From: Oculina patagonica
Taxonomy: Eukaryota
Length of the DNA stretch: 64,000 nt
Reading direction: 5' to 3'
Assembly (NCBI RefSeq): GCF_052425735.1
Contig: NC_135771.1
Coordinates: 3,534,001 to 3,598,000 of the forward strand
Shown here piece by piece: positions 28,612 to 57,912 of this stretch (the stretch's first letter is position 1; each line of letters begins with the position of its first letter). A program made the position numbers and the translations under genes. The notes under the pieces are model-generated. The model worked only from the letters and a program-made list of their open reading frames with translations, was not told the origin of the DNA and ran no database searches.

Positions 28612-31077
28612 ATGCGTGCTGTTGTTGTACAACTGCTGGTTGCCTCGCTTTCGTCCTTGGCACTTACAGAGGGCTCAAGAACAATATGCCAGCGGCCACC
28701 CGCGTGGACGATCAATCAACTGAACCCAATGGCTGAAGCGCGATCAAAAGGTCACGTGGTAATCTTGGGATTGATGCTTGCCAGCTGACGATTTTGTCAG
28801 TGGCAGGCTGAGCGCTTGAACCTCATGTATAAAAAAATTGTTGTGAAGAGGTAAGATGCGAGAAATGCCTTGTCAGTTGCGTGTGTTAAAAAAAAACTGT
28901 CTGATGCCACGACTTTTCTTCAACGCTTTTTGACTTGACCACAGGCAGACCACCCTATGTGTTCGTGGTTAATAATTGTTGCCATAAATAAGATTATGTT
29001 GAAATCAATGGCGCATATAGAAGATATATAGAGAAACATTACGTCGGCTAGTGTGGCACTTTTGTAGAGCTGCGTGCCGCAAATTAAGAAGGAAAGGGGG
29101 GGGGCCGTTAAAAAAATTTTTTTTGGGGGAGGTTTTTTTATAAAAAATTTTTTTTTTTTTTTCTTATTTTTCAAAAAAAAAGGCGAGTTTTTTTTTTTAT
29201 TTTTTTTTTTTTTCGATTTACTACAAAGTCGACGTAATGTTTCTTTATATATCTTCTATATGCGCCATTGATTTCAACATAATCTTATGTCAAAAATTAT
29301 TAACCACGATCACATAGGGTGGTCTGCCGGTGACTTGACTTCCGTTGCTGCAAAAGCCGCACAACGTTTTCAAGCCTCAAACCCCAAACTTGAAATGCCC
29401 CTCTATTCGATTTCAAGTGAAAAATCTTTCGGTTGGCCAGGTTGGGAATTCGAGTTTACTATGAGCTACTTTATTCTTACAATAACAGAAAAGTAATGCT
29501 GGTTTTGAAAAAAGAAAGAAGAGTTTACAATTATTGTTATCCATCGGAAATACACGAGCAATCAGTAGCAGGATACGCCCAACATTTTGTAAAGTAACCG
29601 TAGAGTGAGTAGGTTTAATTTTCTTAAAATTCTGCTGCACTGCGCGTCTGCTGCGAAGCTCTTGTTTAGGCCACCGCGCCTTGCACAAGAAGCAAATGTG
29701 CTAATTTTCTAACACACTATCACTTTAATTTCCTTACTACAGGAATATCACTGATATTTCTTTCATGATTCTGAACATGAAAAAAGCCGCAGCCTCGATC
29801 TCTGAGTTAGAAAGGAGAGTCTCGTTCCCAGTCTACCAAGAGCCAGCCAATCGAGACATCATGGCAATGCTGGGTGGAAAGAAAGACGACATGTTGATCT
29901 ATGATCGATGTGGACTCTTAGTTCATCACTGGAAGATGCCCCTGAGCTATATGGGATATTCATTTGTCTGGTAATTAATTTAACAAGCTCTGCATTTTAC
30001 TTTTTCGGAGATCCGTATGCAACCATCGTCCCAAAATCTACTTCAGGCTAAGATGGCCCCACTTATTATACCAAGGCATGAGAGATGCGTTGGCCTAATG
30101 CATGGTTAGTGCGCTGGACTCTGGATCGAACGGTCTGGGTTCGAGCCCTGGCCGGAGTCATTGTATTTTGTTCTTGGGCAAGACACTTTACTCTCACAGT
30201 ACCTCTCTCCACCCAGGTGTATAAATGGGTACCCCGGCGAATTGTAGGGGCAACTTGACAGAATGCTGCAAAGTAACTTGCGGTGGACTAGCATCCCATC
30301 CAGGGGGGGGGGGGGGAGGGAGGAGCGTAGCAATACTCCTAGCTGCTTCATGTTACAGAAACCGGAGTTACGTGCCGAGAGCTTTGAGTCAGTTGAGCTT
30401 GAAAGGCTTTACGTTTTCGTTGCTAAAGGAACAGACGTAGTAGCGCAAAATATGAGAACTTTATACGTACGTGGAAATTAATTCTTAATTGCCAATCAAA
30501 TCAACTTTGTTTTCGAGGGGCACGAGTCTTCGACGACAACCGTGGCCCCGGATCCCGACGAATTGGAATTTAGAAGTGTTGGTTTTGTGGAGGGAGGAAA
30601 ACCGGAGAACCCGGAGAAAAACCCCGGAGCAAGGACGAGAACCAACAACAAACTCAACCCACATATGGTATCTGGCAGGAATCGAACCCGGACCACATTG
30701 GTGGGAGGCGAGCGCTCTCACCACTGCGCCATCCCTGCTCCCCCAAAATACCATTTTTAGATATTTTCACTTGATATAGGAGAGAATTCGTAAATTCAAA
30801 AAGCTTTGTTTGTGTTCCCAGGAATTCCTTAGTGAACGTTTATAACAACAAGATTCCAAATTGTCAGCCACATTGTCCAACAACCGCCATGACCCAGTCC
30901 CCGACAACCATGCCTATTACGTCACAAGAAGTTTCAACCAATCCCACTTCAGAAAGTGCTACGTCACAGCCTCGACTTGAAACTACGACTAGGTCGTCAC
31001 CCGTGACAACGAAGGAAACATTCAACAGTAACGGAGTAAACCAAAGGAATGTAACAAGCGAAGACGAAACGCCATAA
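28612..31077 (+). CDS. SELENOP: Selenoprotein P-family protein, single Sec (U59 in a URFC motif), 3 coding exons, 240 aa, Thr/Ser/Pro-rich tail
   Basis: Exons 28612-28850, 29743-29970, 30822-31077 (phase 2/2). Signal peptide, CQRPPAW, GHVVILGLMLAS-TGA(28786-28788)-RFCQWQAERL, FPVYQE, LGGKKDDMLIYDRCG: SelP N-terminal domain hallmarks. SECIS downstream. Confidence 0.93.
28940..29332. mobile_element. Palindromic TIR element with 7-bp TSD in SelP-1 intron 1
   Basis: ~110-bp inverted arms (CACAGGCAGACCACCCTATGTG / CACATAGGGTGGTCTGCCGGTG); TSD ACTTGAC; the centre is homopolymer-rich. Confidence 0.8.
30080..30412 (+). mobile_element. tRNA-derived SINE with CORE-like body, SelP-1 intron 2
   Basis: A box TGGCCTAATG..GG, B box GGTTCGAGCCC, then CTTGGGCAAGACACTTTACTCTCAC..CCACCCAGGTGTATAAATGGGTAC. 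Confidence 0.8.
30495..30744 (-). mobile_element. tRNA-derived SINE with the same head and core as 6493-6746 but a different tail
   Basis: Minus strand GGGGAGCAGGGATGGCGCAGTGGTGAGAGCGCTCGCC..GGTTCGATTCC; near-identical to the 6.5-kb copy for ~185 bp. Confidence 0.85.
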
Positions 31078-31307
31078 AATAGATAAATATTTTATTCCTT
31101 AAGATTAATTTTTGAGTGTCGTTTAAGTGTATTTTAATAGCATAGTAATTTTTATTCGCCAGGATAACTTTGGCGCCCAAGTTTTTTAATCTGGAAGCTT
31201 TGTTAAAACATGACAAGCAGACAAAAAAGTGAAAGTTGTTTGTTTCGATGAAAATCGACAAAGTGATAGAAAGAAAAGCGTCACGAAATAATTTTAATTT
31301 TTCTGAC

Positions 31308-31374
31308 AGCTCTTGACTCCTGAATGACGAAGTTGCATGAAACCATTAACGTGCTACTTTTGATGGTTGGAGCT
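31308..31374 (+). promoter_or_regulatory. SECIS element of SelP-1
   Basis: ATGAC (31324) / TGAT (31361) quartet; helix II GAAGTTGCATG / CGTGCTACTTT (11 bp, one mismatch); apical loop AAACCATTAA; helix I AGCTC / GAGCT; ~230 nt after the stop. Confidence 0.9.
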
Positions 31375-34300
31375 AACGCTGTGCAAAAGTTGAAATTATT
31401 TCAATGACTTTCTACGAGATCGTTGCTTCAGTATCTATCTGGCGAGAAATACAGTTTATAAAGAAGTTTTCATAAAGTATTTTGTAATCAAAGATTAAAG
31501 TTTAAAACTGAGTTTTTAGCTGTAGTCTTCTTTCTTAATTAAAAAAAAACCCACACTGTTAAAATTGCCTTATCGTATTCGGGGAAAAAAGTACCTTTTT
31601 CACCAGGACGATATTTTTTGATGACTACAAGGTGACGTGAACTCTAGAAGAGTTTATAAATGTCATAGTCTGGTGAACATTTTACAATATGGAGCTTTTC
31701 AAATTTGCAAATGAAAACCGGTTATTAACTATAAAAGCTGCATACGTTTTTCAGTCCGATAAAATTTTAATCGGTACCCGCTGAAGGTTTCACTGCCGCA
31801 GATATTCTTGGTTTATGGCAACCACAAACTCATTAATTCTACCTCAACAAAGGTCGATGTGAAAAATGGAATTTTGAGTTTAATAGCATGACACAATTAA
31901 GTTTAAAAATTCTAGCGTTTGTTTTGGGAACTTAAAAAGTGAGTATGAATATAAAAATGCAATCAGTACAAAATATGGTTTTCAAACAAAATGACACTTC
32001 CACCTACTTCATGACATAACATCAACTTTATTTTGTTTTGAGTTAAAGTAGCTAACAAATATATATCAGTAGCGAACATCTTCAAGAAGTACACTAAAAT
32101 CGGTTAAAGAGAAAATAAAAATACGATACACACATAAAAAAGAAAAATATATATGTATCATATAAATGTATATATAAGCAGAAGCGTCTAAACGAAGATA
32201 GTGCTTCGATGTTTCTCTTGAACTTTCATAATCTTAAAGTAGAATGCATAGGATTCTTGAAAATTATTTGCAGATTTACCGTATTTCGTGACTAATGCCC
32301 TTAGTTTGTGATAGTTTTGCCCAGTTGTGGCTTGTGTTCATTGTCAACAGACACAATAAACATTAACGAGAAATGCACTCGTTGTTTTCTTACACAAAAG
32401 AAAAAGGCGAAACTTAGTATAACATTTGAGTATACAAATAATTGCGTTGTCGCTATGGTGTCTTAACGGGGTTTGACTGTAATCCATGCTCATTGTTGGT
32501 GGGGGAGGGGGGGGGGGGATGTTTTTGATCATTGAAAAAATATTACATAATTTAGCAGATTGTCGCTGGCACGCATTTAACCAGAGAGACAAATAAAGAG
32601 ACAGCAGGTAGTATAATCCTCTTCGCGGACGCCAGTGAGTTTTCCAGAATGCGACCAGTTTGAGAAGTAAGTATAGTTTCCTTTATTGAGGGGATTTTCA
32701 CGTTTTTCAAGGAACTTAAAATCCGGCATTTCCAATTTTCAAACTGCTTACCATAATTCTGATGTTAGTTACCTTTGTGGAAATCTAAACTCCAATCAAC
32801 ATTGTGATTAGCTGACATTGAAGTTGATGTACAATTTGAATGTGTTTCTGAATGACTTATTTCAATAACAATATAAAAAAGTTAAGAATGATGTAATGTA
32901 TATAATTTTTTTGGGTTTTTTGTTTTTTTTTTTTTTCATTTGTCCTAAGAACATTTTTTGGCTCAAATGGTCTTGAAACTTAGCACGTCTAGCCTAAGCC
33001 AAAAAAAAAAATTTTTCTACAAAATAACGAGAGCGTACGATTATTTCTTGGAAAACTTTTGTTGCTATCTAGTATATAAGTTGACTGTTTCGTAATCTGA
33101 TAATGTTTTCCTCGCGAACTTTTCTCCTAAAACAATCCACCTTCAAATCTCGGATAGATGGGCTTTGTTATAAAAGATAGATGCTTTGGTTAGGAACAGA
33201 TGATATTATTCAATACTAAACATCTTTAAGTTTGTTTGTGCCAAGGTTTTGGCAGCACGTTTGTTTCAACTTTCAGCTTTATCGCTTTCATGGTACCTAA
33301 TACATTGTTTAGGCTTACATCTAAACTGATTGATGCAATATAAGAGATGAGGGAGTTTACAGAAATACAAAAAAGCTTGAATTTATAGCTCACTAGCTTA
33401 TAAGGTTGATAAACAAGTTAAAAATTCTGTTTTGGGAAGTTCCTAACGACTTAAATCTGGGAAACATAAGATTAGGCAAAAAGAGAGTATGAAGATATTA
33501 AAACTCAACACGAGTATGGTTTCCAAACAGTTGTCTCCAAAATGGCATTTCCACTTGTCATAAACTTGTTTGGGATTCTTGGAATTATTCCAAGATTTAA
33601 CATGTTTCGTGACAAATGCCCTTTGTTTGTGGTAGTTTTGCTTCTTTGTGGCTTGCGGGCCATTGTCAACAGTCACAATAAACATTCGAGAAATGCACTC
33701 ATTGTTTTTTTTTACACACAAAGACAGAAGCAAAATCATTTTATTGAATTTTAAAAACCAGAAATATTTAGGTAACAATATAGACTGTTGATCTCCAAGT
33801 CCTCTGTATGTCCCAACAACAAAAAGGAAACTGTATGACTAATAACAAACAAGTCTGCGCTATTTTAGTTAGGTGAGTTTTGCGAGACAAGTGTTAATTA
33901 ATTTTCCTATCGGAAAGTTTGTCAATGCCATAACTATTACAGAAAAGTAAGTATTGAATCAATCTGTTTATTTTTTTCCGGCTTTTTCTTTCAGACTTCT
34001 TTTTCACACCCGTGCAAACATAAATGCCTTTGGGAAGTGCTAAGTTGTGTTGTGGAAACTAGCGAAAAACCTGCGAACAACAAAGAAAAAACCACAACAA
34101 TGAAAACGTTTACAGAAATAGCTACTTTGGGTGCCAGTGGGTTTTTTACGTGACTTGTGCGACAAAGCTTGCAAAGTGCGATCTGTGAGAGGCGAAGCCG
34201 AGCAAAAAAATAGAACGGCTCTGTAAGAAATAGCAGACGATTGATAAAACAAAATGCAAAAATGAGATAAAAATAGTCATGTTTTTAATTTATAAGTGCA

Positions 34301-35717
34301 AACAACTTTTTTGGTTTGTTTACAAACTACAGTTGGAAGCCAATTCAAAATAGAAAAGAAACAAATTCCTATCAAATTTTTGAATGTAGAGATGATCTAT
34401 TTTTATTTATTTATTGTAGTATTGTTTTAATGAATAGTACCACAGGAGACAGCCTGTACATTCAAGTCAATTTAGTCAGCAATTTTCAAAGATCCATTAA
34501 AATTTGAGTGGAAACTCCTGTGGAAAATAACAATATGATCTTATCCGGCGAAAGCAGCTGTTTGTTATTGTGTCTTTTGGTGGATTCCGCAGAATTTTCG
34601 TTTTTGTCAAAACTGCACTTAGAGAGGGCAAACGTGCGCTTAAGTTGCTATAGTTTGTGCCAAGGAAGCAAAAGTATTAAGAATGACGTGCTCTTATTTT
34701 GAAGTTTTTTTTGTACTTTCTCAAATTACCCGCGTTAATCACTCTCAGCGCGAATGAAAATCAATTGAAGGTAAGCCACTATTTTATATCCCATCTTTTC
34801 ACTATGTATATAACGATCTAAATGGAGAATAATACACTTAGTATTCCATGTTAAGAATTTAAGCTGGATGTTCAAAACCATTAATTTGATGTAAAAATAA
34901 ATACTGCCTTTATCCTATGGAAGAGAAGTTTGATATTGCATGTATGGAAAATCTCTGAGCTTTATGGAAAAATATGAACAGATCAAAATATATAAAAACT
35001 TAGATACCTACCCACCCATTGAATTAGAACTATCTCGAACTATAAACCCATAGTCAGTAGAGGCTACATGCCATGAAACAGAACAAGACGCCTAAAGCTT
35101 AATGCTTAAAACCGGGCGGTTGATGTTTAACTACTTCATTAGACAAGTACAGCAAACACTTTTAAAATACCATTTAATTTATATTGAGTAACACGCAAGT
35201 CTGTGGATTGCTTGTCCATGCTTAGACAAATTCCTGCTTAGGCTTTCAAATTTTTATTTTTCTTCCGAATACTGAATAACCTAGGTATTGGAAACGTTTT
35301 GTGTGCAATCTTGAATAAATGAACTCAAACCAGTTAAATGGCAGTACAAATGATCTCCGACCGAAACAAACAAACAATTTCGTTAAAAACTAAGACGTGT
35401 TTTTACATGTAAACATTTTTAAAAATGTACCACACCAAAAAAATGGGAATAAGAACAAGATAAGAAAGCTTTTCAGCTTTCAAACATGATAGCTCCTCAA
35501 GTCAATTTTGGGAAGCAGTCACCCAAAGGCAAGTTCTTGATTGCGTGATTCATTGCAGGTCATTTCTCCATCGCCGTTCGGTTCCGACTGAAACTCAAAA
35601 CCCTTGAATGAAAAACCAAAAATATATATTTTATATTCCTCGCTAAAAAGAGCGAAGTAACCAGAAAATTACAGTATTGGTTCCTGCTCGAATAAAACGA
35701 GTAACATAAATAATAAA

Positions 35718-36526
35718 CATAGGCGTACGGGCACCTTCGGACCTGGGGGGGCGGAGACCTAATTGCCCGAAAAATAAAATGACATGCATTGAAAGCCGAA
35801 TAAAAAGGCATTTTAAATGGATAACGAAACGTGCATTGAAATAGTTGTGTACAAACCTCAACTTGCCTGCTTGCTTTAAGGAAACGATCGTGTTCTTTTA
35901 TTAATCTCGTGGTGTTGCCCGAAGATGTCAATGCACTGTATCTTTTTTCTTCGGAAATATAATTATTATTTATCCACTCCTGAGTTCAGCAAAAATTAAC
36001 GTATTTTCGGGCAGCCAATTTACATTCCCTCACTTGAAAGATATGTAAAAGCGTGCATGTCAGGTAAATGGGTTAAAACATTTCGTTAAAAGTTTTGAGC
36101 TAGGCCTTACAACTTAACATTTGAGTCAAAGCACTAGTTTGTTTCAAGGTCTTAGGCTGGATTCACCGTGCGCAAACGGTCGAGCTACGGAGAATCCTTA
36201 CTTCTGGTTACCCTCGCCAATTTCCTTCTTACTTCAAAATGATTGTAACTGAATCAAACTGTGGAGTAACACAAAATTTGCGAGGAAAATCGAACGAGAT
36301 TATAGCAATTGACATGAGAAATCAGTTAGACTTTTGAACCACAAAGTTATATTTCCAATACTTTTTTCTGTTGATGTAATTCGTTTTGAACGTCCTGTTG
36401 AGATTTGTCGGCTTGTTTTCTATTTTTTCTCTAGGCTTGTTGCCCGAATTCCAAGCATTTTGCCCGAAAAATTTCGGCACTGGGGGGGCTGCAGCCCCCC
36501 TCGCCCCCCCGCCTCGTACGCCTATG
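35718..36526. mobile_element. hAT-like MITE
   Basis: TIR CATAGGCGTACG / CGTACGCCTATG with G/C-run subterminal motifs; imperfect 8-bp flanks ATAATAAA / ATAACAAG. Confidence 0.75.
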
Positions 36527-37728
36527 ATAACAAGAACATTGAGAAGCTTGAGAAGCTTAAAATCGGGCGCTTTGCCTTGAAAGGCAGGGTTCAGTACAGC
36601 AGAAACCACGAAGCAGTTACTTAAGTTAAGCACTCAGTCCGACTGTGTTTGTGTAAGTCACAGGGCTTGCATGAGCTGTATTAGTGTGCATAATATAATG
36701 TCTAGAACGTTGTCGAGATTGCATTATTACTTAAAGACATGATGGTTTCAATTTATAAATGTATCTCACACAATACAAATAAATGATTGAAGTAGACGAA
36801 TAGACAATGTAAAGTTTTAAGACTTAGCAAAGTGCAGTGTATTGGTAATACTGTAAGGTGCGGTTTCACCTGAAGGTCGTGTGCTTTTCGGTATTTTCCA
36901 GGCATTGCACTTTGATGGGACAGTACTACAACTGTTTACCGGGGAACCACTATTGTCAAGAAAATGATCACAACTTGTTGATGAATGATTGAACATTTGT
37001 TTCATACCATTACTGTAATAGCAATTGATGGAGGCTTTTAGTCCTGAACCAAAGTATAAGGACTGGGAAATACTGAAACCCATTATCAGCCACCTTAAAC
37101 GGAAATATCTTGTTGGTGTTTCAAGGAATCCAAGGAAACTTCACTCATCCCATGTATCTATGTATTGCGGTATTTTGTAATTTTTTGAGTGATTTTTGGG
37201 GATGTTTGGCAGGTGATAGTTTTTTTAAAAGAATTAGTAAAATTTAGACAACTAAGAAATATTGAAAATTTAATGTGAATTTAACATTGGAATTTGAAGT
37301 TAGAAATTGGCAGACGGACACCAAACAGCCCCGTGACATCCTGGAGTGTTTTTGCATGGGGGTCAACTGTGTGATGATGTTTCCATTTTTTTCTTCAATC
37401 CCCACTGATAAAGAACTGTTGTTGGTGTTATGTTGGTGTTATCACATGTCAAGCCTTTAACAAGGTATGAAAGAACACAAGGATTTAAATTATTCTGGTG
37501 CTCAATTTTTGCGTAACTAAAATTAATGTTACTCAAATTCCTGATGGATTCTGTCTTAAACTGTTACGAGCTTAGTATTTCCAAATTATTGCATGTCAAT
37601 GTAAGGCAAGACAAGACATGCCTTGGTTCTTATGTAATTCTCTTAAAAACACATAAGATATTGACTATAATTTTGTCTGTGCTATGGCAATTCACAGTGG
37701 GGTGGTCTTGATGTGTCTTTAACTTGTA

Positions 37729-38692
37729 GACTGGACTGGACTAGTAAAACGCGGACTAGTAAAACGCGGACTTGTAAAACGCCTCTAGACACTTCGAATT
37801 CCTTGGCCACAATCATCTTACGGCTCTCTTCAATACATAATGTCTCAAAAAAACAGTAACCTCAGAAAGAAGTCAGAAGCAAATAAGGTCGAAAGACCGA
37901 ATTTGAACATATAACGGCAAATGTTCTAATGTCACGAACGTAGGAGTCGTGTAGGCCCGTCACCTTTATTTACCACATACTGCCCCCAAATTAAAACAGT
38001 ACCCTCAGAAAGAAGTCAGAAGCAAATAAGGTCGAAAGACCGAATTTAAACATTTAACGGCAAATATTCTAATGTCACGAACGTAGGAGTCGTGTAGGCC
38101 CGTCACCTTTATTTACGATTGACTGTTGATTTCTGGACGGGCCCCGTTCTACCTCGTGCGAGCAATAAAAACGACTGCACTCAACAGACGTCAAGTAGTG
38201 GAAAGAAAGAAACATATGCACACAACTCATAGCATCAATCCCGTTGTTTTAGTAGGGGTTTGCAGAACGAACATGTGCTATACTGCAAAAACATCTCCAC
38301 GCTAAAACAGACCATAGAGTGCTCAAAAAAGCTAGAAATATGCCGTCGAAGAAACACACAAGAGCTTCAAACACAAATTGTTTCGCTCGCTAAACCGTTT
38401 AGTTTTATCCGATTTACAAGCGCTTGTTTTACAAGTCCGCGCTCTACAAGTCCGTGCTTAACAAGCCCTCGTTTTACAAGTCCGCGTTTTACAAGTCCGC
38501 GTTTTACTAGTCCGCGTTTTACTAGTCCGCCTTTTACAAGTCCGCGTTTTACCTGAGTCCGCGTTTTACTAGTCCGCGTTTTACAAGTCCGCGTTTTACT
38601 AGTCCGCGTTATACTAGTCCGCGTTTTACAATTCCGCGTTTTACTAGTCCGCGTTTTACTAGTCCAGTCCAGTCCTCAAAATACAGTATGCC
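37729..38692. mobile_element. TIR element whose ends are arrays of the 15-mer AGTCCGCGTTTTACT
   Basis: GACTGGACTGGACTAGTAAAACGCG on the left and ~16 inverted copies on the right (38410-38674); internal direct repeat of ~143-bp period (37850 / 37993). Confidence 0.75.
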
Positions 38693-46542: not shown

Positions 46543-49500
46543 AATCAAAATTGTTTTAAGTGTCCAAATTAGTGTTCTAAAGCTGATCTCGCGAAAACAG
46601 CTATACAAAGGAACTCTGCTAGTTGTCGAAAAAAAACTTATCTTTGGGCTCCTGTGGGAAGCAAGAGCCTGAGACTGCAATTTGGTCATGTACTGTTTTA
46701 CACCAACCGCTGAGACAACACTTCGCAGCACCATTTTTTTTCGTGACACAATGCGTGACCTGCAAGTCTAGATTTTTCGATACGTTCCGTCTTTCCTATC
46801 TCGGAAAATTCGATGCAAATATAGAGTTATTGTTATGTCGTATGATAAGCGCCATTCGACTTTTAACGAGATCTTTCGTTGCCTTACAGGTGCCAGTTTT
46901 AAGTTGCTGTCACTGTAGATCTAAATAGATATCACATTTGATATCAAAGGCTCCAGTGTACTGTTTTCTCATTGCATCTGGTACGATGCAGTGAATGCTT
47001 CAATTGACATCCTTTGTTGGCTGGTAACAAAAAGTGCAACGGTAAGTGCTTATTTCTCGTTTTTTTCTATCCATCGATAACTGACCATGACCACAAAATC
47101 AGTTTCTTTTACCATGTTTACGTTAACGTTTTCGCGCTTTCAAAGTATTAAAATGGTGTATTGGTATTCTTAATTTAAAGGGAACTCTTACTCAGTAAAA
47201 AGATAAGCGTACATTATCGTGTGAAAGGACAGCATGAACATATTCCGCCCTTAACTGACGGTCGAAAATTTAGCGTAACAAAACTGTTACCAGTCGTCAA
47301 GTAGACTTTCAGAGTGCAGTTGCGACGTGAAACAAGGCCCGCGGCAAAAGTTGACATTACTTGGGCCTTTTTCGTTTTACCATGCCCCGGTCTTGGATAC
47401 ATAGACCCTGAAAGGGTTGCCTTTAAAAGAGAATTATTTTATAAGTAACTGCTTGTACGCGAATTGGATTTATGAAAAAAAAAGTAAAAGGACGTATTGC
47501 GTGAGTTTTTGGTTCAATTAAAATCACCAAAATGTTAAATATTAATTAACACTTGTCGCGGCCACAAGTTAACGATCCTTATTTACCCGTGGGAAAATAT
47601 CACTTAGTAAACGCTGTATAGGATTTAATCAAAAATTTAGCCAAGAGACCATAAGTCTTCTCGAAACGTCATTCTAAAGACAAGCAGATTCATTTTATCT
47701 AAATTATGCTTTATGTTTTCCTGTCAAAATTGGTTCGTTCTGGAAAAGCCTTGGATATTTTTTTTTTACGCTGGCCTAGTTTTTTTTTTTGTACCTTCTA
47801 GTCTTCTTATAAAAAGCGACCTTTTGTAGATAGAGAAAAATAGTGGTTTGATTGATGAAACGTTTAACGTATTAGCCCATTTGGTCTTGTGACAAATTAA
47901 CATATTTCATTAAAATGTGCTTAGCTAGTAGGTAAAACCCAGATAATAATAAGCAGCTTAGATTTATATGACTGTTTGGAAAAAACTGGGCGATAAACAG
48001 TCCGAGGACTGCCCAATTTAATTGGCAGCACGAAGAATTTTTTGAATCCATTTATTTCCCAAATTAGACGGAGCATAGCCGTATTCGGGACCACAAAATA
48101 ATTGGACGCTGCTTCAATGGCTTTTTTACACTTTCAATATAATTAATGTCCAGGTCTTATAATCGACATTTTAAGCTATAGGAATAACAGAATAATAGTT
48201 TTTCAGCCCTTTTGCAAAATGAATTTTTTTTCACGGTTTTTGGGTACTGCTAATTAACGGAAGAGAAAGATCCTTCGAAAAAACTGTAACGAGTGTAATG
48301 TAACAAAGTGCTTTCTCTTTAAATAATATGTAAAAAAAAAACACACGAAAACCCTTGGTTTATAATAAGCAAAAAGTGTTTAGACTCAGGTGTCTATGCT
48401 GATGACCCAGATTCTTCGCAAACGGATGTAATTTTTCTCAATAACCCATTTCAGAGCCAAAACTACTTCAAAAACAATCATACTCGCCCGAGGGTCTTCC
48501 CCATTTCTTTTTTTGAAACCGTGGCAACCGTACCATTTTAGTCCAAAGCTAGAAACACGAAGTTCTCCTTTTTAACTGCAGTCAAAATTCTGCTAAAAAA
48601 ATTGCGAGAAGCTGTATTACTGACTGATAGTGTCTTTCTCATAACGCTGTGCAATAAAAATATATTCATTCTCCAAGACTCATTTTAATAGGCCTTTAAT
48701 ATCACGGTTTTCAGCCTTTAGTTATGTTTTTAATTTCCCATACATGGTCTGTATTTTCTCTGCAGATTTACGTTCCTGTTCGCTGAGTTGACGCGGTTCG
48801 CGGGAAAAATTATAGCGGCAAATGTATGGGAAATTAAAAACGTAACTGAATGCTTTCTAGCCCCACTAAATCCTTCCTTCTTGGCGAATAAAAACTTTCG
48901 CCTAATATCTTAACTTTACAATTCATAAGTTGTCTAGAATTTAATTTTTGTAAAAGATATTTGCCGTCGGATTCCCATACAAACACTGTAATTTCTATCC
49001 GCTTTGCCTACTCGTCAAGATGGCGTCGAAAACCGTGATGTCCGTGATAAGGCCTATTGGTTTTCTAGTGCTAAGTGATAAATACTGCTGGGTGAGAGAG
49101 AGGCAGGAAGGGAGGGAGGAAGGAAAAGAAAAGTGCTGAATGTACAAACCAGGTTGTCTGAGAGTGTGGAAGATCGATGAATAACACTGAAAAACAAAAC
49201 TACCTTACGATGCAGAACATTATCATATAAATTGGAAAGTTTAATAGGAGACCAACAATTCCCACTTCCTTTAATACCGAATAAAAATTTTAAGTAGGTC
49301 TGATAAAAACACATTAATGGCTAATATGCATTGTTTTTCGTAAGATTAATATCCACCTCACACACTTTAACGACTCACAGATATTGTATTTTTTTTTAAA
49401 AAAAATTGAAAATTTTACATATCAGTCTTTTGCCCTTTATCAGACAAATATCCGTCAGGTTAAATTTTCTTCGCTGCCTTGTCAATCTTCGGACGGTGCG

Positions 49501-49823
49501 TTAAGATTATCGGTTTATTCAGCACACAAGACCCTACTGTGAATTTTACTTGCACCGGTACTGGCTAAACCTCAGAAACAGTTTCACAGATTGTAACAAA
49601 AATAATTTGGACAAGACAAACGCGATCGACCACTTTTACTCTCAGCCGAGGCGTTCCAAAATTTATTTGTAAGGAGACCAAGAAAATGATTGTTCTTTAC
49701 AAGGTTATCGCATATCGCCAGTAAAAAATCTATAAGAGTCACTGGCTTTAAAAATTTTAATTATTATTTTTTCTTTCTTTCTCGTTTTCAAGGACTCAAC
49801 ATTAATATTTAACTGCAAAAAAG

Positions 49824-50813
49824 ATGTCTGACCTCAAAAACAGAAGCGGAGGACTAGAACCTGGGGAAGCCTTCAGCAAGCCGGTTTATTACGTCATCGC
49901 GGGTGTGTACGCGCTTCTCGCTGTCACAGCACTCAGTCTGAACACGCTCGTGCTTGTCGCGTTCGTTAGAGACCGCACTCTTCGCACGCCCTCCAACAGG
50001 CTGATTTTTAGCATAGCCGTCGGTGATTGGCTACATTCAGTGCTGGCATATCCCTTGGGAGTGGTCAGGAATGCGTCACAAAGTTGGCGCATGAGCGGTG
50101 CAACATGCACGTGGTACGCCTTCATTACAAGTTTCCTATCATTCAGCATCATATTACACTACGCTGTATTCTCTGTAGAGCGAGCTATCACCATTAATTA
50201 CTCCGAGACCCGGTTCTCCATTAAACGAAAGCTCAATTTCGTCATTGGCGGACTTTGGACATTCGCCTTGCTTTGGAGCCTTTTCCCACTGTTCGGTTGG
50301 TCAGCGTACGTTCCTGAAGGCGCAGGCGTGTTTTGTTCAATTCGCTGGCAATCTTCCCGCCCACGTGACATTGTTTTTATAGCATGTATATTCTTGTTCT
50401 TCTTTTTCGTACCCATCGTTGTCATGGTCATCGCTTACTCTTCGATTTACCTCAATATGAGGAAAATGACTCGAAATGCGCATGGCATGTGGGGTGAGGA
50501 CGCTGCTCCTACTGTGGAAGCTATTCAAGCAGAAAGAAAGACCGCACGCATGGCATTTATGATGTCAATTTGCTTCTTATTTGCATGGACACCGTATGCC
50601 GTGGTTTCACTGTATGCTATCATACTAATGCCGGAGAATATTTCCCCGGTGGTGGCCACCCTACCCTCACTGTTTGCCAAAACGGCGACGTGTTATAATC
50701 CAGTTATTTACTTCCTGTTGTACAAGAAATTCCGGGATAGCCTGGGGCAGACATTACGATCATTATGTGGACGCTTTATGAAACAAGACTCAAGTGCCTT
50801 AAACTGGCTGTAG
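49824..50813 (+). CDS. Opsin (cnidarian/anthozoan type), intronless CDS, 329 aa
   Basis: 7TM class A GPCR: LRTPSN, YVPEGAGVFCSIRW, FLFAWTPYAVVS, PSLFAK(286)TATCYNPVIY with the retinal-binding Lys (bovine K296 equivalent). A splice acceptor at 49791-49792 suggests a 5' UTR intron. Confidence 0.95.
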   Translation: MSDLKNRSGGLEPGEAFSKPVYYVIAGVYALLAVTALSLNTLVLVAFVRDRTLRTPSNRLIFSIAVGDWLHSVLAYPLGVVRNASQSWRMSGATCTWYAFITSFLSFSIILHYAVFSVERAITINYSETRFSIKRKLNFVIGGLWTFALLWSLFPLFGWSAYVPEGAGVFCSIRWQSSRPRDIVFIACIFLFFFFVPIVVMVIAYSSIYLNMRKMTRNAHGMWGEDAAPTVEAIQAERKTARMAFMMSICFLFAWTPYAVVSLYAIILMPENISPVVATLPSLFAKTATCYNPVIYFLLYKKFRDSLGQTLRSLCGRFMKQDSSALNWL

Positions 50814-50944
50814 CATTCATGTTTCTAGCTCAGAGATTTTTCCCGACAGCTAACTTTCAAATAAAATTAGAATACGATGTATTTAATGTGTACGTACGTA
50901 GGACTACCGGCTTTGAGAGGGACTGCGTACACGTGGTAAGCCTT

Positions 50945-51226
50945 AGCCCCGTCCACACTATAAATACGTTTCCAATGATGCGTTTTCGCCTATCGTTTAA
51001 ACTACAACGATCGAAAACGCTCATTGTTTTCGTTGAAAACGCATACTTTTAAAAACGCTTCTCAGAGTGGACACATTTGAAAACTAAGCCCTATCGTTTC
51101 AGTGTGGACGGTGAAAAAGGAGGCCTTTCGTCTTTGGTTGATCTGATTTATCGCCTTTCGTCGATCCTATCAGTGTGGACGATATGCAAAACGCCGCAAC
51201 GAAAACGCATTAGTGTGGACGGGGCC
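50945..51226. mobile_element. PIF/Harbinger-like MITE 3' of the opsin
   Basis: TIR GCCCCGTCCACACTA / TAGTGTGGACGGGGC. Confidence 0.8.
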
Positions 51227-53816
51227 TCACTTCGTGAGCGCTCGTTGCATAATACTGAAGTAGGAATCTCAGGCAACATATGCTAGCCAGAGCTAATCCA
51301 CGTTTACTTAAAACGTTGTGTTGTTGTTTACTTCTTGTACTTTGTGGACTGCGTATGTGAGGAGAAATGGACAGCATATGTGAGATTTAATAGCTATTTT
51401 TGATACTTTGGGATCAATTTTAAGCCTGTAATTAATGTAAATATACGTTTGTACACAGAATCAGTAAAAATATAACCGCGTCTTTAGGGCGCTTTTATAT
51501 TTTCTTCAGAGCGGCTAAATGCTTCACTAACGACCAAAGATACAGTGAGTATGGAAGTCAGGATCACAAAAGTTTGGGGTTCCAGGGCTGCGAGACTCCA
51601 GCCCCCCCCCCCCCCCCACCCCCCCCCCCCTTTTTAGGACTCTCCATGTGACTTTGAATCCTTGGTGCATACCAGGTATATCCCCTATATCCCATCCAGG
51701 ACAGGTGATAAGTCACACCACATGGAAAAAACTTTGCATACTACTGTAATTGCGATCTTTGCAGAGTTACACCTTTATCCCGATCTTTTCGATTTCCAGT
51801 ACCCTGGGTGCCAGAGGGTTTTTTTTTTCTTTTTTGCAGGAAAAAAAGCTATCATGGCTATTTTGATAATTTTCGCCCCCCACGATCGCAGTTTCGCCGC
51901 GCGCAAACAGCGTCTTTCTTGCAAAAAAGAAAAATTCCCTCTGGCACCCAGGGGAGATTTCCAGCCGCTTTTCGTGAAAATGACTGAGCTCACTGAAGAC
52001 CGAGCTTGCGCAGGGACTCGCGATTGAGAGAGGCGGAAATCGATCCTACTTCTTTTCGTCGGAGTGAGTAAAACCTCTTGGTGGATTTTGTCGTCTAGGA
52101 ACCTTTTTACGACAGCAAAATGAACGATAACACTAAAATTGTCGGCTAGACACCTCAGCAGACATGTGAAGAGAAAAAAAGAAATTGTCACCAAGTTCTC
52201 CTAGCTAACTTTATCGGAAATATATCGCAAACAGAAAGGAGAATCTACATTTTGATCCTGGGACTGTAGACTCTCAACAGGCGTTCTGTGCATGTCCTTG
52301 CCTGTGATTTTACTGAAATCGGATACAGGAAATAACATGACCCCTAAAGCGCAATCGGAGACTCTCGTTACAAGAAACCTGGCAAAGAAAGGCATTGTTA
52401 GTGTACGCCGAGGACAGAGCAGAAATCAAGCTCGGGCGACGCTATAAACCGTAAGTACAACATTGATACAATATTTAAAGGAGATAGCGCAACTCTAGAT
52501 AGATCATATTTTAGTCAGGGTTTTCCCAATACCATAGATTGATCGAAAGTAAGCGAGAATAATCTACTAACAATTTCCTCGAGGCAACATGCATTTACAA
52601 GGATCCCCGTCGTTCGATCAAGTCTTTTCACTCGTTTTCTCTCTTACACAAGAAAGCGTCGGTACAAACCAGCTTTAGGCATTGTAATTAAGCTAAATTT
52701 TGGCTAGTTTAATGCAGGCCTATCCGTAGAGCTCATTAGCAAATCGAATGACCGGCCGCCGAAACTCCAGCTTGACTCTAGTCGTGCCAGGGACGAACGG
52801 AAAGATCACCTTTCTTGTACCTCCGGATTACAAGATTTTCCTAAAAATATCTTGTCAATTGTGTAGATAGTAGTAAAAATATACTGTTTTAACCTCTCGA
52901 TAAGGTAGTGCCAAAGGGATAGCCTTTTCCTCCCACCGTTCGTAATTTGATGTGCTTTGGCGCATAACACATTTTGTAAAAGAAGATTTATTGTGATCAG
53001 TTAACTTTATTATAGTTTTGATTTGGGAACGGGGACTAAATACGCATAAGGGTTTTCTGAAGCCATCAGCAATATCCCATTCCAAAACCCATTTGGTGTA
53101 TACATTCACTACCTTCAACGATGGTTATCTTTATTGAATGCGGATGACTAGAGAAGGGAATTTAATGATGGCAATGTTCCAAAGTAGAGGCACATGATCA
53201 CAAAGTGATGAAATCTGCTCAAACCAAGACCAAGCAAAATTCTGCTCTGACGGAGTTGGAAGGAACAAAGTCCAAGTGTTGGATCCTAAATACGAGCTAA
53301 AATTTCATTTGTCAAGATTGCCCTTATTCCTTATTCGAGCGCGCAACTAGCAAAATGTTTTTCTCAACCATTTTCTTCTAGCTCCTTTACAGCCGTCACA
53401 AAATGTACGGGTGAAAGGTTACGTGACGTTTCAGAGTAAATGCTGCGTGGCAAATGAATGTATTCTGCAACTTCCGGATCGCGTTTACCAACTCGGTAAG
53501 AGCAAATAGCGGCGAATTAGACAATTAATGACTTATTGTTACTTATTTTCACGGTCACTTAATTTCGCGAAGATGGAACGGGCATATTTCGCAGGACTTA
53601 ATTTTCGCGATTTGGCCAAAAAATACGTAATTAACATAAAAAATACAATAGAAAACTTTTGAAATAAATTTTCGCGGGTTTTAGATTTTGCGATTTTTCG
53701 AAAATCGCGAAAATTAAGTCCCGCGAAAATAAGTAACAATAAGGTACAAAGCGATTTTATGCAACAAAAACATCGTTTTAACATCCACATTGTTTTAATA
53801 CCGCAGGAATTTCAGT

Positions 53817-56800
53817 ATGGCGACGGGAATATTGAAATTTCTCGTCGTCGCACTTCTTGCTGTGACGCTGTCGAGTTCGACTTCCACCTGACAGTGACAA
53901 TGACAACTGCCAGACCTGGGTCCAGTCCCCAACGACCGGGCAGATGGGTCCGTGGTAGTCCTGGGGATGATAAACTCCGAATGACAACACAACATCTGAT
54001 GACAGGCCGACTGTCGCGTCCAGGCCACTGAGAAAATGGCTCAGATGCGACAAGTCGCCAGTGACAGGTACAAATATTTTCTTTGCTTGTTTATTAAGTT
54101 ACTGTCTTTCGCACCCACCATTTCGGTCGAATGAGGGCTCTTGTTGGTAGAAGCACGCTTAATAATGCGTGCCATCGCGCATTGTATTCTCACAGTTATC
54201 ACATCTGTTACTTAGCCTAAAGCCGGTAAAGCTGCTTGGTTATTTTTTTAGAAACTTATAAAAGCGAAAGAATCTCACCAAAATGTTTGGAATGAAAACG
54301 ACTTTTTAAATTAACTCAGGGAGTATTTTCTTGAAGAATGAATTTCAAGTTCCAACATGTATTTGAAAAATTGCCGAGGAAGCCAAACCAAACTTGGAAC
54401 AAGAGCTTCATATAATTTTTAGGTTTTCTCATATTGTATTATCACCATCGTTGCTCATCCTCAGTTCCTGACGTGTTTCTGTCATTTGCCCCCGGGGGGG
54501 GGGGGGTACTCCCATAAATTTCGGATAGGGGTGTGCCGCCAAGGTTCTTTAACCCTGACCCTATTTAAGGATAAAGAAAGCGAAAATTGATACCCTTTTA
54601 AAGGCCCAAAACCGAAAAATGACACCCTATTCAAGGGGAGGAGAAGCGTTCCATGACGACCCAAATAACGGCTAACCGCGCACGGCAACATACAAATCTC
54701 TATAAAATCGCTTTACTAATACAGTAGAACCCCGGTAACTCGAACTCGGATAACTTGAACAACCCCGCTAACTCGAACATACTTCCATTTCCCTTGGATT
54801 TGAACTCACTTTTAAGTCATTTTTACTCGGTTAACTCGAACTCGGATAACTCGAAAACCCCGCTAACTCGAACTAAATTTCATTTCCCTTGATCAAAATT
54901 TGGGTCAAATTTACCCCGATAACTCGAATTCCGGTTCTTGCAACTCGCCACGGTTGCCCATTTATTAGAGCAACAAAACAGATCACCTATTTGACAGCCT
55001 TTTTCCACTCTTATCCTAAAAATTTATGATCGTATTAGAGTTTCTGACGAGATAAGTTTAATTTGCACTGTGCTGTATACTGAGGTGCTGGAAAATCAGT
55101 AAGCTATCAATTATTAACTTGGCAAATTAAATATTCAATCTACCCCGATAACTCGAAACTCCGCTAACTCGAACGGTTTTTCGTTTCCCTTCAGAGTTCG
55201 AGTTACCGGGGTTCTACTGTAACTGAACAGTAAATTCAGTTTTAAAATACCTTTTTTTGGTTTAGCTGGGCGTTTATTTTAACTTATAGAATTTAGGTAC
55301 CCTATCTAAGGATCACACCGGGAACTCATTGCCAAAAGGAGCAAAAATGATACCCTATTTAAGGACCGAGAACCTCAAAAACCATACCCTATCGGGCGGC
55401 ACATACCTATATAGGCCACATATGGGAGTACCCCCCCGGGCATTTGCCAAACACATTTTTTGTAAAACTTGGACATTATTAGGTCTCCTAGAGGCCTGCT
55501 TCTTGTTCGAGATCCGATAAAAGGTGATAGAGGGTTCAATTTCTCTTGTATTACGTTTTGTGGAGTTTGAGATTGGTCCAAATCAAAGCTGGAGAACAGA
55601 AAACACCGAAAAACTGAAACATCATAAAACTGAGCAACAACCACTAAAAAGACATCAGCAGCTGGGTCGGTTTGTTCAAAGCACAATTAAGCAAAGCCAG
55701 GTTTAGAATCAATTTTGATTTCACCTTTTTAACTTTTCAGTGATGATTTCTGTTTATATCTTCAGTCCTCCAGTTTAAACGTCAACTAGTCTCAAACTCC
55801 ACAGAACATAAGCAGTGAATAAGGAAAACACTTTTATACAAGAGAAATTGAACCCTCGATCAACTTTTAACCCAGGGTTAGTGCTAATCGGCTTTCGGAC
55901 AACCCGGCCTGTAATCAAAATTTACGCTTATCCTGGATTAACTTAATCGTGCTTCGAACAACCCGGCCCCGATGTTATTTTTTGTGGTCTCTCTCGCATT
56001 TTAGTGTATTAATCCCTGGGAAACTGAGCTTGTCATTGCTGATAATGTTCTAACATGTTTGCATCGTTTCTTTTCACAGCAACATGCCCGACATTGTCTT
56101 CATGACAGTAGTTGGCCAGGGTGTTTTCACGCAGCCATGGAATCAAACTGATGACATGTTTGAGGAGCCTCAGCCAGGTCTGTTGTCTAAAATCTTAGGG
56201 GATAAGACAAGTGGAATGTTTGTTTATAATCGCTGTGGAAGCCTTGCAGGAGAACTTCAGTTGTTCCCGTTGGTGCCGTTAGATCCTTCGGAAGTGACAA
56301 ATGAATGGTAAGTCTGTTTATTAGTTTTTCCGGCTATGTCTAGCAACGGAAAATTCTGCTCTGTTGTCACGGAGATTTCGCAGATTTTTGGCCTAAACCG
56401 CCCTGAAATTAGTGAAAGGCACCTAACCCATAAATCACAATATCTTTGAACATCTGAAGGAAGATATAACCTTAATTTGCGGGTAGAAATCAAGCTACGG
56501 CTATAGATATTGTTTTTTTTAAAGACGTGTGGAAACAATTTGAAAACGTTTGCCGAACGTTTTCATATTGCAATCCGTTTCCATCCGCGCCATCCGCAGC
56601 CAAAGATGCCCGTTAACAGTTTTAGTGCTCTAATATAGCCATTTTTAATAAAAATGGACTATTATTCTAGATTTCATGCGAAACAAACATAAATTTTGGA
56701 TGTTCAAAAATCTGGTAAAATTCGTGACATAGTCCCTTTAAGCAACATATAAAACCAAAATGGCGACATATACCTATAATTGACATTGGCTTGGACCTCC

Positions 56801-57135
56801 ATGAAAGTTGCAATAATAGTTTTGTGTTCTATTAGTTTTAGTTATTCTAGATTTGTCATTGGCCATTTGCTCTTTGTGTTGGTTATTCGTGTAGGTCTGT
56901 TTGTATTCGCTTTCTCAAGTAAGTCTCAGAAGTGTCTCGATTCTTCAAGCGATAATTCGTAACCCAAACATCTCTACACTGGCTGCTCTGGAATCTCTAA
57001 AACTTAATTTTCTTTGTGTTTCTCAACAGGAACATCATCAGAAAAGCCTACAATAAGTGCCCGCAATGCAACAAACCAGCGCCAACCACTCCAACACCTC
57101 AACCTGAAGACGAGACAACTACCAGTCCACAGTAG
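53817..57135 (+). CDS. Divergent selenoprotein P-family paralogue with six in-frame TGA codons (putative Sec), 3 coding exons, 194 aa
   Basis: Exons 53817-54067, 56080-56307, 57030-57135, with the same phases as SelP-1 and an identical 228-nt middle exon. Translation: MATGILKFLVVALLAVTLSSSTSTUQUQUQLPDLGPVPNDRADGSVVVLGMINSEUQHNIUUQADCRVQATEKMAQMRQVASDS NMPDIVFMTVV...LGDKTSGMFVYNRCG...EW NIIRKAYNKCPQCNKPAPTTPTPQPEDETTTSPQ*. TGA at 53889, 53895, 53901, 53982, 53997, 54000. Two SECIS-like elements downstream. Confidence 0.85.
54491..55440. mobile_element. CCCGGG-terminal MITE with 8-bp TSD, SelP-2 intron 1
   Basis: TSD CATTTGCC at 54483-54490 and 55441-55448; same terminal design as 16631-17055. 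Confidence 0.88.
54722..55219. mobile_element. Tc1/mariner-type MITE nested in 54491-55440
   Basis: TA|CAGTAGAACCCCGGTAACTCGAAC...GTTCGAGTTACCGGGGTTCTACTG|TA; many TAACTCGAA subrepeats. Confidence 0.9.
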
Positions 57136-57320
57136 TTCAAAATGCGAAGGAATAAATTTATAGGTTTTGTAGAGTTACATTAATTATGCTAATGATTAAT
57201 TAATCGTATTTTGTTACTGTCATCTCAATTGTAACCGATTCGAAACTTGTGAACACGTCCGTCTTAGAACATAGGAAAAATGTCAAAGGCAACCTGATTT
57301 TCGTGTTAACAAACTTGTTC

Positions 57321-57564
57321 TAGAGCGACTTTCAATTGGCTTTCGTAAATTCAAAACCAGGCTCAACACAACAAACACAAATAACGCTATGAACCAATCA
57401 GAATTCTGAAAAAAATTCATGCAACACGTGCCAAGCGCGGGAAATCGCGCGGGTTGCCAAATGACGATTGGTTTCGTTCCCACTCTTGATTGGTTAACAG
57501 AAATAAAGTCTTTCTCTGATTGGTTAAAGCACTTTTTGTAGATAGTCAATTGAAAACCGTTCTA
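57321..57564. mobile_element. Dispersed palindromic MITE family member in the SelP-2 3' UTR
   Basis: TAGAGCGACTTTCAATTG...CAATTGAAAACCGTTCTA with CCAATCA/TGATTGG motifs; relatives at ~14250-14555 and ~63155-63514. Confidence 0.75.
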
Positions 57565-57732
57565 CTACGGATAGAAACAAATACTCAAGCGAGATTTTTT
57601 ATTCAAATCAAGTAGTTTCTTTCTTTATATTTGACATTATTATATACGCGGAATCGTATTGCCTTTTTAAACGCGTCACGGGTGCGAATATCAGGAGAGA
57701 GAGGGAAAGTCTAAGTTCCAGCACTAGAAACA

Positions 57733-57796
57733 TGATGACTTATGAAGAACAAGCGGCAAAAAGTTTTAACTGTTTGTTTTGATGGTACGGTCATTA
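57733..57796 (+). promoter_or_regulatory. SECIS element 1 of SelP-2
   Basis: Helix I TGATGACT / GGTCATTA; ATGAA (57742) / TGAT (57780) quartet; helix II GAACAAGCGG / CTGTTTGTTT (10 bp); apical AAA at 57758. Confidence 0.85.
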
Positions 57797-57844
57797 ATTT
57801 TCTGCTGAGAGCTAAGAAACAGAACATTTCATTGTGAGTTCTCT

Positions 57845-57912
57845 GACTGGTTTGTATGACGAGCTTACAGTAAAGGTAATTAATTGTAAGTTTTTGAATT
57901 TTTTTACCAGTC
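57845..57912 (+). promoter_or_regulatory. SECIS element 2 of SelP-2
   Basis: Helix I GACTGGT / ACCAGTC (perfect); ATGAC (57856) / TGAA (57895) quartet; helix II GAGCTTACAGT / ATTGTAAGTTT (11 bp plus one extra T); apical AAA at 57872. Confidence 0.85.

Follow-up and report, generated by a model that had tools for sequence, protein, structure and literature searches.

Linked SelP genes with one and six in-frame UGA codons in the genome of the stony coral Oculina patagonica

Layout and structure of the two SelP genes

The 64,000-nucleotide stretch of the Oculina patagonica genome examined here (contig NC_135771.1 of assembly GCF_052425735.1, positions 3,534,001 to 3,598,000 of the forward strand; hereafter the window, numbered from its first base) contains two genes of the selenoprotein P type, SelP-1 and SelP-2, both on the + strand. 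SelP-1 has one in-frame TGA codon (28786) and SelP-2 has six, all predicted to encode selenocysteine (Sec, U), and hairpins of the selenocysteine insertion sequence (SECIS) type were found in the 3' untranslated region (UTR) of each. The start codons, at 28612 and 53817, are 25.2 kb apart, and 22.4 kb separate the SelP-1 SECIS from the first coding exon of SelP-2, a preliminary description of the sequence having given about 23 kb. The features of the two genes are as follows.

28612..28850, +: SelP-1 coding exon 1; signal-peptide-like start, C-Q-R-P-P-A-W, strand beta1, predicted Sec in U-R-F-C; ends in phase 2
29743..29970, +: SelP-1 coding exon 2; 228 nt, KDDMLIYDRCG core; Pfam SelP_N 64.3 bits, E 1.4e-17
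30822..31078, +: SelP-1 coding exon 3; completes the Trp of W-N, C-Q-P-H-C, T/S/P-rich tail, stop TAA at 31076-31078
~31197..31264, +: SelP-1 proximal SECIS-like hairpin; AUGA, 10-bp upper helix, A-rich loop, CGAU in place of UGAU
31315..31374, +: SelP-1 distal SECIS; Rfam SECIS_1 25.9 bits, full model
52420..52449, +: 3' end of a non-coding leader exon of SelP-2, joined to 53807; loose contig ends of runs X1 and X6
53466..~53495, +: alternative leader of SelP-2, joined to 53807; loose contig ends of run X2
53807..54067, +: SelP-2 first coding exon; ATG 53817, signal-peptide-like start, six predicted Sec, strand beta1 (VVVLG); ends in phase 2
56080..56307, +: SelP-2 coding exon 2; 228 nt, WNQTDDMFEEP and FVYNRCG
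57030..57135, +: coding part of the last SelP-2 exon; completes the Trp of W-N, C-P-Q-C, T/P-rich tail, stop TAG at 57133-57135
57136..57987, +: SelP-2 3' UTR; AATAAA at 57982-57987; covered by contigs of X1, X2 and X6 (57029-57987)
57735..57794, +: SelP-2 SECIS 1; SECIS_1 19 bits in a local scan only, fold z-score -3.7
57847..57910, +: SelP-2 SECIS 2; SECIS_1 27.4 bits, fold z-score -3.4

Each gene has three coding exons, and direct reading showed all four coding introns to be GT..AG introns of phase 2. The second intron cuts the Trp codon of W-N as TG|G in SelP-1 and SelP-2 alike, the middle coding exon is 228 nt long in both, an AG acceptor lies 32 nt (SelP-1) or 10 nt (SelP-2) upstream of the ATG, and a Cys pair (Cx3C in SelP-1, CxxC in SelP-2) precedes a T/P/S-rich tail. 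These shared traits, including the common strand, had been listed in the preliminary description, and all of them were confirmed. Both predicted proteins have hydrophobic N-terminal stretches (MRAVVVQLLVASLSSLAL and MATGILKFLVVALLAVTL) followed by a polar region, as judged by eye. After the domain, neither gene contains a TGA codon or a His run, the tails closing at TAA or TAG, and Pfam reported no family on either tail exon, hence no match to SelP_C, a feature of SELENOP1-type transporters. The KDD of SelP-1 (GGKKDDMLIYDRCG) is gone from SelP-2 (GDKTSGMFVYNRCG), just as had been described, and PAW is gone as well.

The canonical gene SelP-1

Judged by its sequence, SelP-1 is a canonical SelP_N (PF04592) gene with one predicted Sec in a U-x-x-C motif. 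Its TGA codon (28786-28788) lies in LMLAS-U-R-F-C, after the VVILG strand (beta1), and the protein continues after the Sec motif with KKDDMLIYDRCG and then C-Q-P-H-C. The part of exon 1 before the Sec codon scores 23.5 bits against SelP_N (gathering score 23.2), and exons 1 and 2 match the profile collinearly, at positions 4-34 and 60-137. In a six-frame search of the 529-Mb genome SelP-1 was the sole match to PF04592 (62.5 and 31.5 bits). PF04592 is present in each of the SelP-1 orthologues P0035-P0045, the junction of exons 2 and 3 recurs in the annotation of Desmophyllum pertusum (P0045), and the U-x-x-C redox motif is also present in the orthologue at locus L022.

Two further observations concern this gene. 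Intron 1 contains, at 28940-29332, a foldback element resembling a miniature inverted-repeat transposable element, with two nested pairs of inverted repeats (62 nt, 97% complementary; 48 nt, 92%) around an A/T-rich core. A Logan contig from another coral (locus L015, about 252-485) carries a SelP-1 orthologue in which, six codons past the Sec codon, the window's CAG (Gln) is replaced by TAG, with exon 2 open; a polymorphism, a recent pseudogene or an error of assembly could account for it.

Transcripts and annotation of SelP-2

SelP-2 is a real, spliced, expressed gene. Contigs of four public sequencing runs, presumed to be RNA, were mapped on positions 53700-58000. The junctions 54067|56080 and 56307|57030 (GT..AG) are both present in contigs of X1, X2 and X6, and the second is also present in the fourth run; these contigs splice into 53806|53807, an acceptor ten bases upstream of the ATG, and the two leader exons joined to it in different runs suggest alternative promoters. 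Contigs of X1 and X2, the runs labelled as the window's species, have no differences from the window across the first coding exon, and the TGAs are therefore not assembly errors. The 3' UTR contigs extend to 57987, just beyond AATAAA, and span both SECIS elements. Spliced transcript contigs of other corals (L003-L014) keep the same exon order, six of them providing full sequences, and exon 2 has 17 orthologues at 68-95% identity.

The TGA codons of SelP-2 are located at 53889, 53895 and 53901 (U-Q-U-Q-U-Q) and at 53982, 53997 and 54000 (U-QHNI-U-U-QADC), with LPDLGPVPNDRADGSVVVLGMINSE between the Sec triplet and the second cluster. Public gene models omit this region. The Oculina patagonica protein ACROYT_G042984 matches the window's SelP-2 identically throughout the parts it includes, starting past the last TGA and skipping 31 residues of exon 2, and the named models of Oculina, five Acropora species, Montipora and Desmophyllum are described as "uncharacterized" or "hypothetical" and all begin after the last UGA. 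A 90-codon open frame at 53759-54031 (+) overlies the Sec-rich exon in another frame, in which the TGAs of the Sec frame do not act as stops, and is a trap for gene finders; cross-species conservation over this interval goes with the Sec frame and not with the overlapping one.

The introns of SelP-2 attract hundreds of contigs at 54420-55430 and 56430-56740, with very high summed depth in all four runs and many internal skips. The contigs belong to abundant families of interspersed repeats with inverted arms (CCCCGGTAACTCGAACTCGGATAACTCGAA) that are apparently either transcribed or very numerous.

Conservation of the SelP-2 UGA codons

A codon alignment was made of seven full coding sequences, namely those of the window and of L003, L006, L009, L010, L012 and L013, the last being identical to P0025, which clusters at 90% identity with Acropora proteins. 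All six TGA columns are TGA in every sequence (7/7), at synonymous divergences (dS) of 0.9-1.6 between the window and the distant members and of up to 1.9 among the remaining pairs. A seventh column differs among the sequences: L010 and L013 have TGA, L012 has Cys and the window's lineage has Asp or Glu; such an exchange between U and C is a classic signature of a Sec codon. The residues between the Sec positions change (UQUQUQ, URURUQ, URUPUQ, USUQUQ), and the Sec positions themselves are fixed. No further stop codons or frameshifts were found in the window or in the transcript contigs. Pairwise ratios of nonsynonymous to synonymous divergence (dN/dS or omega; Nei-Gojobori, own script) are 0.26-0.42 overall, 0.13-0.30 in exon 2 and 0.2-0.7 in the Sec-rich part of exon 1. 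This pairwise comparison (a per-branch one had been proposed as a check on the preliminary description) indicates, together with the six TGAs kept in all seven sequences, that SelP-2 does not evolve neutrally. Both hallmarks of a eukaryotic selenoprotein, an in-frame UGA that is conserved or exchanged with Cys and a SECIS element in the 3' UTR, are present, and the UGAs of SelP-2 are probably read as Sec.

Two other readings of the upstream region can be weighed at this point. If the public annotations were correct, the protein would begin at the Met after the UGAs (MAQMRQVAS...), and the part before it would be a short upstream open reading frame ending at the first TGA. The NCBI models of Oculina patagonica, Acropora spp., Montipora and Desmophyllum agree in starting past the last TGA, but this reading is highly improbable given that the stretch between the TGAs is conserved as amino acids (omega 0.2-0.7) and can be aligned with exon 1 of SelP-1, strand beta1 and redox Sec included, that a signal-peptide-like start is obtained only from the upstream ATG, and that the frame is open through six TGAs in seven sequences, with Sec/Cys exchange at a seventh position and two conserved SECIS elements downstream. 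Alternatively, SelP-2 could be a decaying duplicate whose TGAs are nonsense mutations and whose transcripts are noise, as might be suspected of a gene that has no Pfam match above threshold and is 31% identical to SelP-1. Such a pseudogene is contradicted by the spliced contigs, with correct splicing in several runs, by purifying selection on exon 2 (omega 0.13-0.30), by orthologues in both major stony-coral clades, and by the same six TGAs in all sequences with no other stops or frameshifts, and decay is thus an extremely improbable explanation.

The predicted redox site of SelP-2 differs from that of SelP_N proteins. The window's sequence reads SE-U-QHNI-U-U-QAD-C, in which U-x4-U-U-x3-C replaces the U-x-x-C of SelP_N. 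Relatives have U-Q-A-C (L012) or U-Q-A-U (L010 and L013), using the second U of the U-U pair. The claim that SelP-2 lost an intact UxxC is therefore correct for the window, L003, L006 and L009, but not for the family, in which UUQAC and UUQAU occur, and the motif has been remodelled rather than lost.

SECIS elements

The Rfam gathering score for SECIS_1 is 35, and at that score no SECIS was found in the window, the model being too strict for these elements; scans by E-value, conservation and folding were relied upon instead. When both strands of the whole 64-kb window were scanned by E-value, SECIS_1 matched only 31315-31374 (25.9 bits) and 57847-57910 (27.4 bits), both on the + strand and both a few hundred bases past a SelP stop codon.

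The two SECIS elements of SelP-2 that had been noted in the preliminary description are both conserved in eight species. Identity over the 200-nt region that contains them is 81-87% for six other corals; for L012 it is 70%, taken over a matched part of 151 nt. Across the eight aligned species there is no variation in the AUGA, GA and apical AAA columns, and both hairpins are folded into SECIS shapes by RNAalifold, with mostly compatible changes (G-U to A-U or G-C). The orthologue at L009 scores 31.8 and 21.1 bits against SECIS_1, and the distal elements of L003, L006 and L012 score 21-24 bits, the distal orthologues as a whole spanning 21.1-23.8 bits.

SelP-1 had been credited with a single SECIS. 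One scoring element is indeed present, but a second SECIS-shaped hairpin (~31197-31264) precedes it, which has no Rfam score in the window and folds as helix, internal loop and helix, and orthologues of SelP-1 have two: L022 has two SECIS_1 matches (proximal 25.3 and distal 34.2 bits) and at L016 a pair of hairpins shaped alike has AUGA/UGAU cores. The window's proximal hairpin aligns to the proximal elements of L022 and L016 as well as to SECIS 1 of SelP-2. At most, the SelP-1 gene of the window may be losing its first SECIS. When the twin modules of SelP-1 and SelP-2 are compared, proximal aligns to proximal and distal to distal, the AUGA-to-AUGA distances are similar (about 117 vs 113 nt), and the proximal elements have helix sequence in common (GTTTGTT... 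GA). Since one-Sec orthologues have two SECIS elements and the twin modules are homologous, the twin arrangement is the inherited state of both genes, not a gain that came with six Sec codons, and the proposal that SECIS number tracks Sec load did not survive this comparison.

Homology and fold of SelP-2

BLASTP of SelP-2 against SelP-1 gave E-values of 5e-7 for exon 2 and 2e-5 for exon 1. With hhalign, the two coral families matched with 95.1% probability over exon 2 and with 97.7% probability over the full length (E 1.4e-12, 158 collinear columns, Sec written as Cys). The aligned columns of the full-length comparison are 31% identical, and the codons split by the two introns fall at the same places. 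Opposite the redox Sec of SelP-1 stands the fourth Sec of SelP-2, and opposite its conserved first Cys (C-Q-R-P) stands the third (U-Q-L-P). When all six frames of the 529-Mb genome were searched with a SelP-2 profile, only exon 2 of SelP-2 itself and exon 2 of SelP-1 were found.

Pfam found no match on the window's SelP-2 pieces. Orthologue pieces without the N-terminal 60 residues score 15.8-20.2 bits against SelP_N, which is the only Pfam family matched by more than one SelP-2 member (7/12, below threshold), and a protein-language-model search placed SelP_N clusters first (0.91), followed by other thioredoxin-like families. The order of elements in AlphaFold models, helix-strand-strand-helix-strand-strand-helix, is compatible with a thioredoxin fold minus beta1 at low predicted local distance difference test (pLDDT) values. 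A failure to match the SelP_N profile had been named in advance as evidence against the pair; the Pfam cut-off was in fact missed, but profile-profile comparison gave homology at 97.7% probability and the branch is not neutral. SelP-2 therefore appears to be a diverged derivative of SelP_N, although not a member by Pfam's criterion.

An origin of SelP-2 from an unrelated thioredoxin-like selenoprotein family, with convergent likeness and chance linkage to SelP-1, would account for scores below the Pfam threshold, for the lack of any canonical SelP_N protein in a large profile search and for a fold search without significant matches. It would leave unexplained the identical intron phases, the aligned intron positions and the 228-nt exon 2 of both genes, as well as the collinear full-length homology (E 1.4e-12), the standing of SelP-1 as the sole other genomic match, the homologous twin-SECIS modules with their shared helix sequence, and the position of the two genes as neighbours in a syntenic block, and it can be given very little credence.

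Age and genomic context

The named relatives of SelP-2 are from five Acropora species, Montipora capricornis, M. foliosa, Desmophyllum pertusum and Oculina patagonica. These genera together cover both main clades of stony corals, and the duplication must therefore predate the split between them. No named SelP-2 matches from anemones or octocorals were found, which is weak evidence, as gene callers readily miss such genes. The full-length profile match, the aligned introns, the sole other match in the genome and this spread among taxa bear out the earlier proposal that the two genes are paralogues that arose by an old local duplication.

Two neighbouring genes recur at SelP loci of other corals.

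20013-20786, -: MCLC/CLCC1-like chloride-channel exon; Pfam PF05934, 97.7 bits
49824..50813, +: opsin-like G-protein-coupled receptor gene of a single exon, between the SelP genes; Pfam 7tm_1, 141 bits

An orthologue of the opsin-like receptor gene lies 2.5-3.6 kb upstream of the first coding exon of SelP-2 in L019 and L020, and L016 and L022 have a 56-68% identical one immediately downstream of SelP-1, in the opposite orientation. The MCLC-like exon is upstream of SelP-1 in L022 and in the window alike. Homologues of SelP-1 and SelP-2 were found on contigs of equal size in three assemblies (146,046, 468,164 and 1,955,195 nt), which suggests that the two genes are linked in three other assemblies. 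Of the conserved gene order that the preliminary description had proposed to check, the adjacencies opsin-SelP-2 and MCLC-SelP-1-opsin thus recur elsewhere, but none of the foreign loci read, with flanks of up to 10 kb, contains both SelP genes. The seventh transmembrane segment of the window's opsin-like receptor (FAKTATCYNPVIY) includes the Lys that retinal-binding opsins are expected to have.

Origin and possible function of SelP-2

The best explanation, and a probable one, is an ancient local duplication in the stony-coral lineage that left SelP-1 as the canonical gene and SelP-2 as a functional, diverged copy with six Sec codons and inherited twin SECIS elements. The gene pair is firmly supported, and the inference that tied SECIS elements to Sec load is rejected. 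Several points weigh against the explanation as a whole. Every SECIS score in the window is below Rfam's 35, and pieces of SelP-2 never reach the SelP_N cut-off (best 20.2 vs 23.2 bits). A search of 1.84 billion representative proteins with the exon-2 profile of SelP-2 (76 positions, half of the alignment rows being exon-2 fragments) found no canonical SelP_N protein, only short SelP-2-like proteins; its long matches (PPR, WD40, LRR) were rejected as repeat noise. Two AlphaFold runs on the SelP-2 piece after the Sec codons, which does not include beta1, gave pLDDT values of 52 and 60, and Foldseek found nothing significant among Swiss-Prot models (best E 0.025, template modelling score 0.28), the matches including many weak thioredoxin-like ones. 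The RNA nature of the runs is only guessed, the intron-less form of their contigs being the argument that suggests it, and no foreign contig read, with flanks of up to 10 kb, spans both genes, so that linkage in other corals is suggested by equal contig sizes.

According to this duplication model, the six UGAs of SelP-2 (seven in Acropora-type relatives) would be decoded as Sec by means of the pair of SECIS elements in the 3' UTR. As in established selenoprotein biology, SBP2 bound to a SECIS would bring eEFSec and Sec-tRNA to each UGA, and two SECIS elements may aid the decoding of many UGAs, as has been proposed for SELENOP. The additional Sec residues would be built into the N-terminal domain: U-x-U-x-U would follow directly after the signal peptide, the ancestral redox Sec would be retained, U-U would be inserted after it, and Sec or Cys would stand two to three residues further on. 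The hydrophobic N-terminus implies that SelP-2 may be secreted.

The spacings of Sec in SelP-2 resemble C-x-C, C-C and C-x-x-C, and they are located at the mature N-terminus and around the active-site position. SelP-2 is most likely a selenium-dense extracellular redox protein or a chalcogen- or metal-binding protein that may also be able to carry selenium. Its invariant Sec positions would be no less compatible with a constrained centre for redox chemistry or metal/chalcogen binding than with passive cargo, and a carrier role like that of SELENOP may coexist with such a centre.

A strict division of labour had been proposed instead, in which SelP-1 is a redox enzyme, SelP-2 transports or stores selenium like SELENOP1, and the two SECIS elements are due to the Sec load. 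Motifs of the U-x-U type, like U-R-U-R-U of SelP-2, are also present in mammalian SELENOP, at the C-terminal end that binds the receptor; this, a putative signal peptide and 6-7 Sec per ~170 mature residues speak for a carrier, and the core change in the proximal SECIS of the window's SelP-1 could mean a relaxed need for that element. Vertebrates, moreover, have a pair of multi-Sec and single-Sec SELENOP genes (PMC13134290). However, one-Sec SelP-1 orthologues retain two SECIS elements, as does amphioxus Bf.SelP_a (PMC3473315), no change is seen at the six core Sec positions over dS > 1, with a total of only 6 or 7, and the Sec residues are located in and around the active-site region of the domain rather than in a disposable tail. 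The division of labour is therefore regarded as doubtful.

A bolder possibility, considered rather unlikely, is that SelP-2 represents a class specific to stony corals in which the SelP domain has turned into a poly-selenol centre, with U-x-U-x-U plus U...U-U-x-x-U/C in metallothionein-like clusters. If so, SelP-2 might act extracellularly, perhaps at the interface with the skeleton being calcified or with the symbionts, by binding metals or metalloids or by multi-selenide redox reactions. It would then be the first example of Sec accumulating within the N-domain of SelP, as opposed to a tail or domain repeats, and a natural model of how clustered and adjacent UGAs only 25-62 codons from the start can be decoded efficiently.

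Comparison with known SelP and multi-Sec proteins

The paralogue pair of vertebrates consists of SELENOP1 (multi-Sec) and SELENOP2, also named SELENOPb (single-Sec) (PMC13134290). Like it, the coral pair has a member with a single redox Sec and a multi-Sec sister, both putatively secreted and of SelP_N type, and the multi-Sec gene has two SECIS elements. The two pairs differ in that the extra Sec residues of the vertebrate protein are in the C-terminal SelP_C tail, whereas all six predicted in coral SelP-2 are in the N-terminal half, and in that the coral single-Sec gene also has two SECIS elements in relatives. The coral pair arose independently of the vertebrate one.

Amphioxus has Bf.SelP_a and 3NSelP in tandem, the former with one Sec and two SECIS elements, the latter with a thioredoxin-like domain three times and two C-terminal Sec residues (PMC3473315). 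The coral pair is similar in being a tandem of SelP genes with similar exon organisation and in having extra Sec in the N-terminal region, but unlike 3NSelP, SelP-2 has a single domain, within which Sec appears to have been added (U-x-U-x-U, U-U, U/C). In comparison with SelP_N itself (PF04592), SelP-2 has FVYNRCG, strand beta1 and the positions of the redox Sec and of the introns, but is without KDD, PAW and U-x-x-C, its pieces scoring 15-20 bits. SELENOL has two nearby Sec residues able to form a diselenide (PMC13134290), and the predicted U-Q-A-U of Acropora-type and L010-type SelP-2 has the same U-x-x-U spacing; SELENOL, however, belongs to a peroxiredoxin-like family, no sequence relation to it is claimed, and the window's SelP-2 has U-Q-A-D-C.

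A 2012 survey found no SelP in Nematostella (PMC3473315). Neither PMC13134290 nor PMC3473315 describes a single N-terminal domain with extra Sec inside it, and literature searches, which covered sources other than the metazoan survey of Baclaocos et al. 2019, found no instance of it and nothing relevant on SelP, SECIS or Sec-rich proteins in corals or other cnidarians.

The pair has several implications. A conserved protein with 6-7 predicted Sec residues is missing from coral proteomes and from the expression and proteomics studies that depend on them, and SelP-2 would point to a selenium-dependent extracellular function in corals. The split into single-Sec and multi-Sec genes is an independent parallel to that of vertebrate SELENOP, with selenium added differently. 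Two SECIS elements can long precede and outlast a high Sec load, which bears on the question of why SELENOP genes have two. Three UGAs at codons 25-29, together with adjacent UGA-UGA, put models of processive Sec insertion to a hard natural test.

Other features of the window

Outside the SelP block, a palindromic hairpin of ~115 nt is present at 6950-7070. Plant microRNA precursor models match both of its strands far below their gathering scores, and a perfect hairpin derived from a transposon is more probable than a known microRNA.

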